From contig JALMLS010000369.1 of NCBI GenBank assembly GCA_038496445.1, positions 124,001 through 188,000 of the forward strand: 64,000 bases of DNA, written 5' to 3'. Origin of the DNA: Trichosphaerium sp. ATCC 40318. Taxonomy: Eukaryota; Protista; Tubulinea. The translations under genes were made by a program, and so were the position numbers. Within the stretch, counting starts at the first letter, position 1, and every line of letters begins with the position of its first letter. A model generated the notes under the pieces. The model was not told the origin of the DNA. It searched no databases and was given only the letters and a program-made list of their open reading frames with translations. Positions 4,114 to 43,751 of the stretch are shown piece by piece.

Positions 4114-4597
4114 TAAACACAAGTTAGAATAGTTGCAATGCCTATTTTTGTTGGCTGTGTACTTGCGCTTTTGAACAAATCGTGTTTAGAAAATTCTACA
4201 CATTTCGACGATTTTTCTCGAAGGCTTGATTTCCACTAGTAGTGGCCACTTATGTTTACAGTGTGACATAGAACTTGACTTTACAATATTAATTCTGTAT
4301 CGTAATACCTCTGATTTCACGTGCAACAATATTTGATCATTAAAAAAAAACCAATACATAAATCAAACACTAGCAATGCTAAATCAAATAAATGCCTTCA
4401 AATAAAAATTTTGCCAAATACCCGGCTGTATTTAATAGCCAACTAATTTACATGTGCTACAAGTATATTATGTACCAAGTACTTACAATTAGCACAACAG
4501 AATATAATCCCCATTATTTTTTTGTTGTCATAACTTCGAAGACTTTGAAAGTCTTCGTGTTTCAACGGCAAAAAAAAACTAGGTAAAAATAATCCTC

Positions 4598-7044
4598 CTA
4601 ATCTTCAGCATCAAAGAACTCATCGTCGCTCTCGTCATCACCGCCTTTATCTTGTAGTGTAACAGCATCTGTTTTTTCTGTAATTTCTTGTACATCATCT
4701 GCGTCAGAAGGAGAAGATCCACTACCACTGAGTTTGCTAAACTCTGGCTTTAGGTTCCAAACACCATCCTCATCTTTTGTGAAAAATTGTCTTGGCTTTT
4801 CTTTGAATCCCTCACTAAAACAAGCAATAAGTATAAGATAGTTTACGTACTTTCAAGACGATAGAGCCGAAATAAAAATAAAAGAAAAAAAAAATTGAAA
4901 TATTTCAATTTACCTTATTCTGTCACGTTGAGCTTGCTCAATTGTAGTCTTTGCATCATCTGCCTTTTGAAGATCTCCGCCCAATACATTACGTGTTACA
5001 TCAGCCCAAATCCTTTGATCCATTAGATAAAGGAGGGAAAGAGAAAAAACAACGAGGAACGAAATCCTTCATTTTTTGCATAAAAAAAGTCCAACGCTAA
5101 GATTGAGCGTTTGTGCTAACACCATTTTTTTGAAAATATATAGTACATACTTTGTAGAATCCCAATCATTTTTATCTTCCCATTTAGGATACAACATCTT
5201 GGCTTGTTTTGGGTTATCCTTCTCATCACTGGAAACTATAATTGTTTTATTAGGGTACTTCTCCTCTTCTCCCTCAGGCGCTGCAGGTACGACTTTTACA
5301 AGGCTAATGACTTCTAAATAGAAGAAATACAATCAGTTAAATGTTGGTTTAAAAATAACGTGATTTGCACGTGATAACTTGCCTTTTTTACCCCAAAATC
5401 CTTCAAGCTTGTAAGTAGGTTTATCGTTATCTAAGTCCTCTTTTCCGACGTATATTCCTCCTGTAACTTCAGTTTTACGGTTTTTATCAGCGTAATTCGT
5501 TTTTGCGAATATTTGGGTTTCTACGCAGAAAAAATCAAGTTTATCCATCCACGTGTGATAACGTGTTCCCCATAATACGTTTTTAATTGCCAAACTTGGG
5601 ATACACTAAACAGAAAGTCAAGGTTTTTCGATTGAAATAAAAAAGATTCATTGAAAAAAAAAAAGGATCTCAAGTAGCGTGAACGGTGCTCTGAATCTTT
5701 TTGATGATGCGATTTTAAATGTTAAATATTTTATGACGTACATCAACAGCAACGTATGTTTCATTAAAATTGTGATAGGTAATTTCTAATACTCCATTTT
5801 CTAACAAACAAGTGTTAAAAATAAGGTACAAAAAAATGGAAAAAATATTTTACACATTGACTATTTTTTTGACGTACGAGTCAAGCTGACCCAAGTGCCA
5901 TGGTACTATTTAATTATTAGTATAATCAACAAAATATAAAATATAAATTTTCGCTTTAAAAAGTCGAAGAGGGTCTCCTACAATCGAAACAATTTTCAAA
6001 AAAATATTTTTTCACTTTTTTGTTGGTAAAAAAAGCCGAGTTTGTTCCCAGAGACAGTCGCACTAGGACGTGCTAGATAGACCCGTAAATATAATAAAAA
6101 GCACTAAAGGAGGCCCTCTACTAAATGATCCGGGTACAGTCTTTGACACCAACCGTTTGTTATGAAAGTCTTTATCAACGTACTTTTACTGCAAACTCAA
6201 CATTGCATTTTATGGTGATGTTTTGTTTTACATCCTCAATAACAAATGCGCCCATAGGTGGATGATGAGACACTTGTTCTGCCGTAAAATAAGTTTCATT
6301 ATCATCTGTTTTTAGGAAGCATTCATGGCACTCTCCGAGAACAGGATTGTAAGGTTTCTTTTGAAACTAAAGCGAATTGATTAGCTACACGAAGAGCAGA
6401 GTTATTTGAAAAAAGAAAAAACAATAAACTTATAAAAACACTATCAGTTGTTATTATCAAGGCAAATGACCTGTTGTGGTACCAGTACGGAAAAAAACAA
6501 CCCAACATGATTTTGCTCAAAGTCTGTAGTTGTAATTTAACCGCGTATAGCACTAAAAAGGTAATGAGAGTATTTTGAACATACGTAGGAGCGTTTAAAG
6601 GCAGCGTAAACATAATTCATGACTATCGCCATTCTCTCAACTGGGGACTTTGTGTTGTTCCCGCTACGCCATGTTATACACTGTTGGCGAGTTATTGTAA
6701 GAAACAAACGTACGCGTTCAAAACGGGAAACCAACCAAGACAGCGTGAAGCACATAGCTCCAGGGCAGAGTAGGGTTCACAAAAGCCAGCCGGAAGGCCT
6801 GTATTAATAATTATTTGGAGACTATTGTAGTACACTTCTACGTACCCACTTTTGTGACATCGCCACCATTCAGGCGCAATTTATTTACGACCATCTTCGC
6901 TACAGCCCAAATTCCAAGCTTTCTGGCTCTCCAAGGACCAATGGAGTGTACGTAAGAAAACCCCTCTACGTATTCTTCAATCCACTCCTCGCCTTCCTCG
7001 CGAAATGGCACATTTGCCTCTGCACCACCCAAAAACATTGACAT
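4598..7044 (-). CDS. Oxysterol-binding protein-related (ORP), short form, with C-terminal FFAT motif
   Basis: Spliced product has [20 protein letters not shown], the ORP signature AEQVSHHPP, and IKNVLWG; it ends [13 protein letters not shown]. Confidence 0.9.
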
Positions 7045-7578
7045 TACGTATACGCGCTCTAAATAGTTTGTGATTACGTCAATGTGTATGTAGGACCACG
7101 TTGACGCCTTTGACAGTCACTTAACAAAAAAAGACGAGTTTTGACCACTCAGTGTTATTATGCCGTTCAACTTGCGGAGCGTTTCTGAGCGACGATAACA
7201 AATTGGTTCTTTCGCGAAAATACAAAAACAAAGACCGGCTAGTTACTGCTCCTAGCACCCTCGATAAAGCGAGTGATGGTATCAATAATTTCGACACGTT
7301 CGCTACCTTCACTGTAAAATATCCAACAATCCGAGTACCCTTTACATGCGTGTACGCCATCAAACACCTTTTGAAACTGTCGGGGAAAGAAATAATCGAA
7401 AATATCGAAAAATATCGTAAACCCTATGAAGCAAAAAAAACCAAATGCAGCAATGGCGAAAATTAGTTCATTTACAAATTGATCGAAAATTTTGGCTTTT
7501 TGGGAGTACTAACTACAGAAGGGGGTTCGTCATCACCTAATATTACAACATTAACAACAAGCCCATGCTAAACAAGTG

Positions 7579-9393
7579 TTATTCAGCAAACGTACTGGAG
7601 CTGCTGCTTGAAGCCGACAAGTCATAGTCATCTGAATCACTACTTGATTCATTATGTCTCCGCCTGGTAATTGGTGGCGGTGTACAATCGGCTAAAAAGT
7701 AGTGTGAGATAAACAGAAAACAGCCTTTTTTATGATGGTACCATTGTAGTGAGAGCGTGAAGTTTGGCACGACTCCATAGGGGATATTGGTGCTTGGGGC
7801 CGAGGACTAGCAGGGAGAGTCTTGAGATGCGTATTAGGTGGTACAGTTCCCCGTTTGTTCTTTTCATGATGTGTATTTTTTTCTCGGTTTGATAAATGCT
7901 GTGATAGCACGTCCCATTGCTTCTGTCCATCAAGGACTTTTTGAACAGCTGGCTGCTCTAATCCAATATTGCGGAATGTCAAAGAAAGATGCACTATAGT
8001 GCCCATGTACTGAGTCTCAGTATTAAGTTTATGCCTAAATGTTTGTTGTCAACTAATGATTATCTTGTTTTTGACGCATACCTATTAATAAAAGATTCTA
8101 TTAAGCGTGAAATAAGATTGCCACTTGTCATGATGGCTACTACGTCCTTTGCAGAAGCGGAGCGAATACAGTGTATAATTATACCTTCAACAAGGTGATG
8201 TACGAAACTATTTGTTTCATGTTTAAACAGTAAGTCCTTGAGAAAAAAAAACCATTTAGATACATCGCAACTAGGAAGAAATAAAAGAGTAGAATTACCA
8301 ATAAACGAGCCATTAAATCAAGTTCCATTATTGCTGGAATAACGCAAGGATATGTTTTTCCCAAAGCACATACGCTCTCTAGTACCTCCAGGATCTACAC
8401 AAGACGTTTTAGAATGCAAAGGAACAAAGCAAATCCGAATTGAGCGAAAAAAGTAAAGGCAGGAAAATAAAATAGTTTATGCGTTTCCTGACCTTGGTTC
8501 GCGCAAGTCCAAACATTGGAACAACTGATCCATTTGCAGCTTTCCTCTGTAGTGGTTTCCATTGTTTTGGAGGAGCAAATAACAGTTTGTTCAAAATAGG
8601 AAGTGAACGTATAAATGTTACGAGCCACTTTGGTGCGTTTGATGGTATCTTCATTATTTGTTGAGCAACTTCCTACGGAAATAAAAAAATTAAATAAATA
8701 GTAAAGGAAAAAAAAGAAAAAATATTAATTGACCCTTTTACAGCGTTAAAGTCGTACCTCACAATCTCTTGATTGTAGCATTGTATCAATGAGTACAATA
8801 AAAATCTCTAGACCAAGGCCAAAGTTGATTTTGCTCACCTAAGCGTTGTGAGTGCTGTCAACAAAAAAAAAAGAGTGCAAAAATTTACCGTTGGCGCTGT
8901 TATAGCGGCTAGCAATTTCTCATAGTTGGAAGTTTCGTCCATAGCCTGATACACAGCTTGTTGAAGATGTGAATTATCTAGAATATCAATAAACGCTTGA
9001 CAAGCGTTAACAGTCTCCTAGCGATTAGTTTTAGCAATAAAAGGGTAGAGTGCGAGCTGGTTTTGGTATTATTGCGAGTATTTATACCTGTTTCTCGAAT
9101 TTAGCATCAAACATCAGCAAAAGCTTTGGTATTATCAATTTGATTAATTTACACCATCTGGTGTTTACGTCTTCATCGTCAGGGATAGTAACTTCATTTA
9201 CTAAGCCCTCAATAAACTCCTGGGTCTGTACATCAGGGGAGAAGCTTTGCAAAAACGATTCTAGGGAATCAGGCCCTGTAGAGCTATCTTCTACGCTGTC
9301 GGTGACCATAGGCTGTACTTCGCCCAATAGGCCAGTAGGTGATAATGGTACTGAAATAAAATCGGTAAGCGTTTGCGTTGGTGTGTTTAGCAT
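7579..9393 (-). CDS. Uncharacterised multi-exon protein (boundaries approximate)
   Basis: Chain of minus-strand exons with GT-AG boundaries from ATG 9393 to a Ser/Asp-rich tail ending at 7579; no family recognised. Confidence 0.5.
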
Positions 9394-40085: not shown

Positions 40086-40269
40086 GGCGTAGTGGTGTAT
40101 ACTGTAAGTATGTAGCGTGAAAGGGAAACGTGATCCTGTTGATGCGATAGTGGGGTGATGTTAGTAAATTAAAACCCAAACTGGGAAGGTGATGACTTCA
40201 ACAGCCAATCCGGACTTTAAAATATTGAGAGCAGATTTGTCGAGAATAGTTTGGTTTTTAATTGTAAGT

Positions 40270-41802
40270 TTAATAGTAACCTAGCAAGTTAGCAACATCC
40301 TCGCGAATGTGTAATACTTGAATGGTTGGCCTTCCTGAGAACCTAGCCATGAACGATCCTTGTACTGGTTGCATATCAGTTACAGTTACACTGCCTGAAC
40401 AGCGCCATAGTATTGTTGCTTTTTGATACATACTATTCCCTTCACAATTTACGGAAATTGTAGCAGATTGCGCCTTCCCTACTCCTGGCCAAAAAGGAAA
40501 CTTTGCATAATGAGAGCGAAATATTGTCTCTGATACTGCTGTTCTCGCTCCTTCTAAGCGTTGATCACTTCGAAATGTGTTAGTATCCTCAATTTTAAAG
40601 GAAAATCTTACTCGTTGATCTTGTTCAAGTACTCAGAGATTGCAGAACCATAGTCCTGCCACGTTTTAACATTGCCTTGGCCATTTACTTTGAGAGACAC
40701 TTTGGTCGTAATTTCGAACGCTTGCACGGCACCAGTTTTCTGGTACTTCTTGAGCGCGTTTTGGGCAGTTGTTATTGCAGTAGATGCTTTTTGGTTTTTG
40801 TTTGTTCGTGAAACCTCATCGTTCATTCGCTTCATAACTTTCTTTAGAGCTAATTTATCTGCCCGAGTGTATTTGAACACCAAGTTATTATATGGGTTTG
40901 CTACATCCAATATCAACGGTCTAAGGAGGTTAATACACAACAGCGAAAGAAGTGAGAAAAATAGAGTCTTTTAAAAAATCACGTGGCGTACTTTTTGGAC
41001 TTTAATGTTTTGGGAATATACTTTCTATAATTGCCATCCTTGTTCAAGATAATGTGAATGTTTTCAAAGTCTTCAACTGCCTCCAATGCGAGGTATGCTA
41101 ATGATTGAATATCTTTCGGATTATATTTCTCGTTCACGTGCAAAGTAATAAGCTCTAAAATATAAGCTCTAGGATTTCCTTTGTTATTATGTTCCTCGCG
41201 CTTTTTTTTTACTTTTCGGATGAATTCGCGGACGTGTGGTTTGCTGTTTCTCAATGCATCCCTCATGAACTGAACTGCTTTCTTAGCAAAGTGCGATGAG
41301 AACACATGCTTCCTACGCCAAGAAAACTGTTGTATCTCTTTCCAGACTAGAGGCCAATAGCTGTTACCATATTTTTGTACTAAACAAAAACAATGTTAGA
41401 TACGCTTTAGCCACCACAAAAGTTACCTTCGTGCGCTGCTGTGGGTAGCAAGTCAATTTTAACAGTTGTGCTGCCTCTAGTAGCTTCGAATTGAACAGCG
41501 TATGGAGTACAATGTAAATTACGTATGTTGAGATGACCCAAGTGCGTTTGTAGTACATTGGCTACCTTTTCGACAAGTTTTTTCATTAAAATCTCTGAGA
41601 GACTTTGTCTCTTTGTTTTGCTTAAATACAATACTAGATCATAGTCTGAGGATTCAATATCTGTTTTTTTACCTTTTGAACCCGCCTTTAATAAATCAGT
41701 AGCTATAACTCTTCATTTACTTACTTTAAACAGTTCCATAACTGAAAAGTGATGGCGGAGACCTTGACCAAGCTCGTGTATTATACTCCCTGCAGACGTC
41801 AT
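40270..41802 (-). CDS. 2'-5'-oligoadenylate synthetase-like (OAS/cGAS/CD-NTase superfamily) nucleotidyltransferase with an extra C-terminal domain
   Basis: Spliced: ...ELFK|AGSKGKKTDIESSDYDLVLY (GS + DxD), VKIDLLPT (third Asp), FIRKVK...PRAYILELIT, RPLILDVANPYNNL (OAS C-domain P.ILDPA.P.NN hallmark), then ~190 aa more to stop 40270. Confidence 0.85.
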
Positions 41803-41929
41803 GTGGTTTTATAACTGATGTTGGTAGTAAAAAGATACGACGAAAAAATCAGTGTAAAGAAGTTTGTCAAATTAGGTCAAAATGAAATGTGATGATATTT
41901 TCCGTGGTCTTTTTCATTTTATGGGAAAC

Positions 41930-43751
<1,822 letters not shown>

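Follow-up and report, generated by a model that had tools for sequence, protein, structure and literature searches.

In OASL, the OAS core is followed by two ubiquitin-like domains, and the catalytic residues have been lost. To our knowledge, no OAS-type enzyme of a protist has been characterized biochemically, and the non-animal members are known to us from sequence surveys. Published surveys use the OAS1_C domain as the criterion for the OAS superfamily; according to them, amoebozoans possess OAS-related proteins, as do 8 of 12 eukaryotic supergroups, and these proteins nest in bacterial clade C (PMC10400998, PMC10732462). The OAS-type enzyme class is already known in protists. A candidate member with a different architecture lies in the window, the whole stretch of 64,000 nucleotides from Trichosphaerium sp. 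ATCC 40318 that was analysed here. It combines an OAS core with an orphan, apparently α+β domain, an architecture that we have not found described and that occurs, so far, in one organism. The reading favored here, held with somewhat better than even confidence, is that of a 443-residue cytosolic OAS-superfamily enzyme that performs ligand-triggered NTP condensation and carries a lineage-specific C-terminal targeting or regulatory domain.

The gene is expressed and spliced as modelled, with five exons and four GT..AG introns (Table 1). Transcript contigs of four public runs were placed on positions 40100–41950, three of the runs from one sample of a 2023 study (X1, X3, and X4) and one from a 2015 study (X2). 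Introns 2–4 are skipped exactly in the contigs of all four runs, which belong to two independent studies, and intron 1 is skipped in both contigs that reach that far. The 5' end of the cDNA is defined by a SMART-type template-switch oligo, present as the loose end of the X3 contig, and the 3' ends of the contigs fall at 40236–40249, approximately 25–35 nt beyond the stop codon. Retention of intron 4 would lead immediately to a stop in the frame (GAG TAA). The transcript contigs thereby bear out the splicing proposed in the earlier note, which had described an intron-containing OAS/cGAS-like gene in a protist-like genome.

Table 1. Features of the OAS-type gene and its transcript; positions are those of the window.
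Feature	Position	Strand	Residues	Remarks
Transcript	40236..41850	(-)		contigs of four runs from two studies
Coding exons, joined	41802-41725, 41685-41427, 41379-40992, 40920-40612, 40567-40270	(-)		last exon with stop
Exon 1	41725..41802	(-)	1-26	start ATG 41802-41800
Intron 1	41686..41724	(-)		39 nt, GT..AG, phase 0, in-frame TGA; joint in X1 and X3
Exon 2	41427..41685	(-)	27-112 and one base	putative NTase catalytic lobe
Catalytic codons in exon 2	41682-41677; 41646-41644; 41640-41638; 41454-41452	(-)	G28-S29; D40; D42; D104	
Intron 2	41380..41426	(-)		47 nt, GT..AG; joint in all four runs
Exon 3	40992..41379	(-)	113-242	boundary codons common to exons 2 and 4; putative helical lobe
Intron 3	40921..40991	(-)		71 nt, GT..AG; transcript contigs
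Exon 4	40612..40920	(-)	242-345	boundary codons common to exons 3 and 5
Core end in exon 4	40919-40884; to 40770	(-)	243-254; to ~292	PLILDVANPYNN; last OAS-core helices, then start of orphan domain
Intron 4	40568..40611	(-)		44 nt, GT..AG; CTAAC branch-site-like box
Exon 5	40270..40567	(-)	345-443 and stop	beta-rich end of orphan domain
Orphan C-terminal domain	40273..40769	(-)	293-443	split by intron 4

A phmmer search with exon 3 recovered P0001, a public protein of 443 aa predicted from an MMETSP transcript, which is identical to the gene model exon by exon. The translations of the five exons sit in P0001 at residues 1–26, 27–112, 114–241, 243–344, and 346–443; they are contiguous, and where a junction is of phase 1 or phase 2, the two exons have a single codon in common. 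All full-length analyses used the P0001 record. Every motif quoted in the earlier note is present in the spliced protein, namely GSKGKK (residues 28–33), SDYDL (39–43), KIDLLP (102–107), and PLILDVANPYNN. The catalytic motif is not split by intron 1, as that note had proposed; the intron falls just before A27-G28-S29, after the preceding strand. The motif is indeed invisible in the track of open reading frames, for a cause other than the one given: it lies upstream of the first start codon of the open frame.

Residues 1–292 comprise a complete two-lobe OAS/CD-NTase core, in which a G-S loop, an Asp-x-Asp pair, and a third Asp occur together with the OAS-type motifs of the C-lobe. Vertebrate OAS1 possesses the same two-lobe organization, and phmmer against solved structures returns the OAS1 chains 1px5, 4rwn, and 4ig8, the best at 24.6 bits with an E value of 1.7e-4, a faint similarity; the remaining rows are unrelated proteins with E values of 0.02 and weaker. 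The alignment pairs residues 13–255 with OAS1 residues 46–308 of 1px5 and covers both lobes. In the catalytic lobe, G28-S29 falls on the GS loop, and D40, D42, and D104 fall on the Asp triad, so aligned that AGSKGKKTDIESSDYDLVLYL is paired with an OAS1 catalytic-lobe stretch and the OAS1 EFDVLP is paired as well. In the helical lobe, encoded by exon 3, FIRKVKKK (residues 165–172) lies opposite LIRLVKHW, and AYILELIT (184–191) lies opposite QYALELLT. The pairs FIRKVK/LIRLVK, YILELIT/YALELLT, and PLILDVANP/PVILDPADP correspond to the motifs LIRxVK, YxLELLT, and P(V/L)ILDxxxP. The putative catalytic residues G28-S29, D40, D42, and D104 are all intact, and the core is strongly basic, with a computed pI of 9.9.

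Among Pfam families, OAS1_C (PF10421) is the only one above threshold in the full-length protein, scoring 28.7 bits against a gathering cut-off of 19.9 bits over residues 135–283 (profile positions 20–176 of 188). Judged by the OAS1_C criterion, the protein belongs to the OAS-superfamily CD-NTases, which have been reported from amoebozoans before, and this predicted membership rests on profile scores of 25–47 bits. Scans of single exons all remain below threshold (OAS1_C, 15 bits; Polbeta, E 0.006), and a six-frame search of the genome with OAS1_C returned no match, so that this gene was missed as well. The Mab-21 family (PF03281) has no match in the full-length protein at E values up to 10; the designation OAS/cGAS-like, given in the earlier note, is therefore upheld for its OAS part, and its cGAS part appears valid at the level of the superfamily only. 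Phmmer with exon 3 against 1.84 billion representatives found no true relative besides P0001; the core is therefore very divergent. Two further proteins matched in that search, P0002 and P0003, are repetitive, match over short stretches, and are not counted as relatives.

The strongest profile matches are not to OAS1_C but to models of bacterial CBASS cyclases of clade C (NF041116 and PADLOC PDLC00808). The NCBIfam model CBASS_cyclase_a scores 47.1 bits (E 1.7e-12) and places residues 7–292, almost the whole core, on profile positions 29–307 of 317. The PADLOC cyclase model gives an E value of 8.6e-11 on the full length and 5.6e-5 on exon 2 alone. Such matches would fit an enzyme that resembles a bacterial clade C CD-NTase, that makes a cyclic tri- or dinucleotide upon activation by a protein partner, and whose C-terminal domain serves as a docking site. 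The OAS superfamily itself nests in clade C, and the characterized clade C members make cAAA (PMC10732462). However, 47 bits is far under the equivalog cut-off of 200 bits, the scores of different profiles are not rankable against one another, and SMODS (PF18144), a family that the earlier note had proposed to search together with OAS1_C, has no Pfam match in the full-length protein, as is also the case for DZF and PAP_assoc. Furthermore, unlike the genes of bacterial CBASS cyclases, the amoeba gene is nuclear, contains four spliceosomal introns, and has no operon partners. On balance, this alternative, the main one, is considered unlikely but not negligible.

Compared with vertebrate OAS1, the protein is approximately 30–45 residues shorter at the N-terminus: residue 13 lies opposite OAS1 residue 46, the start corresponds approximately to OAS1 residue 34–46, and the N-terminal helical segment of OAS1 is absent. 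The start of the CBASS cyclase profile, approximately 20 positions, is likewise absent, with residue 7 opposite profile position 29. In addition, the OAS1 stretch RNRPTK, which we take to hold residues contacting dsRNA, lies opposite RNSKPH, and its basic residues are not kept. This loss also agrees with the clade C alternative. Owing to the shorter N-terminus and the loss of these presumed dsRNA-contact residues, the activator cannot be inferred from the alignment.

In the favored reading, that of an OAS-superfamily enzyme with a targeting or regulatory domain, the enzyme would bind a ligand that activates it, and by the example of OAS1 this ligand is most likely a nucleic acid. The ligand-bound enzyme would then condense NTPs into a 2'-5'-linked or cyclic oligonucleotide, as judged from its family, and this product may act on a separate receptor as a defence or stress signal. 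The C-terminal domain would direct localization, partner binding, or regulation, by analogy with the tail anchor of a paralog and with the prenylated form of OAS1. The gene does not represent a new system; its interest is that of a fully defined candidate for biochemistry that is both intact and expressed.

Two near-identical OAS-like paralogs are encoded in the same genome, on contigs C105 (L013, G000:C105:173500-178500) and C46 (L014, G000:C46:270500-275500). Both possess the same core and exon layout as the gene described here, including the PL(I/V)LD motif. Their identity to it amounts to 74% over the 23 residues at the start of exon 2, where the catalytic loop lies, and to 33–35% over the helical lobe. 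The C105 paralog is intact: its GS loop, Asp pair, and third Asp are all retained, and a hydrophobic tail forms its C-terminus. In the C46 paralog, the second half of exon 2 has no clean counterpart, and this copy looks degraded. The exon 3 search of 1.84 billion representatives retrieved neither paralog. The paralogs match the core only, up to PL(I/V)LD; beyond this motif, a hydrophobic tail anchor takes the place of the 150-residue domain. The C-terminal module thus varies within the family, being a hydrophobic tail in the C105 paralog and an orphan domain in the present protein. The paralog with the different module offers a natural comparison for the role of the tail module.

The orphan domain starts in exon 4 and fills exon 5. 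Its length is approximately 150 residues (293–443), because the profiles end at residues 283 (OAS1_C) and 292 (CBASS cyclase); the earlier note had counted approximately 190 extra residues. The domain is real coding sequence, since exon 5 is an open frame of 98 codons that is joined in frame in every transcript contig. The earlier note had called this part unrecognized, and it remains so: Pfam, PHROGs, NCBIfam, and PADLOC gave nothing significant with it. Weak responses of Phage_tube (12.6–16 bits), a T7SS effector family (18.8 bits), and phrog_31559 (approximately 18 bits) lie below threshold and are taken as chance. Relatives of the domain were sought by word searches, exon 3 being the query of the exhaustive phmmer search; queried with exon 5, with the full-length protein, and with the region 293–443, the word index returned P0001 itself or nothing. 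Likewise, the atlas feature search and the scans of viral and metagenome loci gave no match to the domain, no second copy was found in its own 70-Mb genome, and no internal repeat was found within it.

Predicted without an alignment, the AlphaFold model of the whole protein reaches a pLDDT of 35.8, and that of residues 300–443 reaches 51.2. The latter model begins with a strand, continues with three helices and then four strands, and closes with a short helix; residues 293–443 are taken as a putative lineage-specific α+β domain. Fold searches with it remain at noise (Foldseek TM <0.3, atlas TM <=0.46, VIA Z <=6.2), so that the structural comparison proposed in the earlier note yielded no confident fold. 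The rows for PP2C, proteasome, and gasdermin folds have scores within this noise, and nothing is drawn from them. For residues 368–443, the best phmmer matches among solved structures are constant domains of antibody light chains, with E values of 0.1–1. The best of these, to kappa light-chain constant domains at E 0.1, is not significant, although the pattern is suggestive, with a Cys and a Trp aligned at an Ig-like spacing (FxFxP...SVxC...W). No Pfam Ig profile responds, and the low-confidence model gives no Ig match. An Ig fold is therefore not assigned.

The failure to find relatives, a paralogous copy, a family, or a confident fold, together with the occurrence in one species so far, would also fit a core as described above that is followed by a fast-evolving, functionally neutral extension, such as a captured exon, that itself serves no purpose. 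However, an open frame of 98 codons in DNA of 38% G+C is estimated to arise by chance in only about 0.1% of cases, all transcript contigs join the exon in frame, and the secondary structure is predicted to be regular and to contain alternating strands, an indication of a folded domain. A roleless extension of this kind is thus regarded as distinctly unlikely.

For the preferred targeting or regulatory domain, the paralogs provide the closest comparison. Since the intact paralog has a membrane tail anchor at the same place, the domain is more likely to serve in targeting, partner binding, or regulation than to act as a second catalytic unit. The tail anchor suggests, by analogy, that this enzyme family places localization modules at the C-terminal end. 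A prenylated isoform of OAS1 exists and provides a second analogy for a C-terminal role in localization. Vertebrate OAS1 has no counterpart of the additional 150-residue domain. In the case of OASL, the OAS core is also followed by an added C-terminal module of approximately 150–165 residues, but the amoeba protein keeps the catalytic triad, and its module matches neither ubiquitin nor any other family in Pfam.

Elsewhere in the genome, on the minus strand of contig C150 (L012, G000:C150:22000-31000, approximately 4320–8890), a gene encodes TPR repeats, a basic linker, a kinase-like part, and a KEN/Ribonuc_2-5A domain, the last scoring 25.6 bits against a cut-off of 23.3. Its layout resembles that of RNase L, with TPR repeats instead of the ankyrin repeats of RNase L. 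A link between this ribonuclease and the OAS-like enzyme is speculation. The orphan domain might in principle be a new ligand-sensing or effector module on an OAS-type synthase that feeds a non-animal counterpart of the OAS–RNase L pathway, for example via the soluble TPR-pseudokinase-KEN ribonuclease of C150; such a reading is very improbable, and the domain would matter in its own right only if it were a true sensor or effector. Finally, it is scarcely credible that the protein is an RNA-modifying terminal nucleotidyltransferase of the poly(A) polymerase/TUTase type rather than a signal synthase: the N-lobe responds weakly to MTPAP-like_central (17 bits) and to Polbeta (14–17 bits), under their cut-offs (27 and 26.9 bits), as is expected of any NTase-fold N-lobe, a PAP_assoc or TUTase C-lobe is absent from the full-length protein in Pfam, the OAS-specific motifs accompany the OAS1_C match, and the profile scores do not group the protein with the PAP/TUTase, CCA-adding, or DZF families, a grouping that the earlier note had named as contrary to its proposal.

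In the X4 contig, exon 4 has two listed differences from the genome, at 40707 and 40789, of which one is synonymous (T313) and one is K286T; they are possibly allelic variants. No gene suggesting a partner was seen near the OAS-type gene, and its neighbor on the plus strand, which starts at 41921, encodes an unremarkable NADP-dependent oxidoreductase (ADH_N_2, 45 bits, 42332–42589). The divergent starts at 41850 and 41921, both marked by the template-switch oligo, are separated by a gap of 70 bp (41851–41920), which would constitute a very compact bidirectional promoter; the X1 contig nevertheless spans it.
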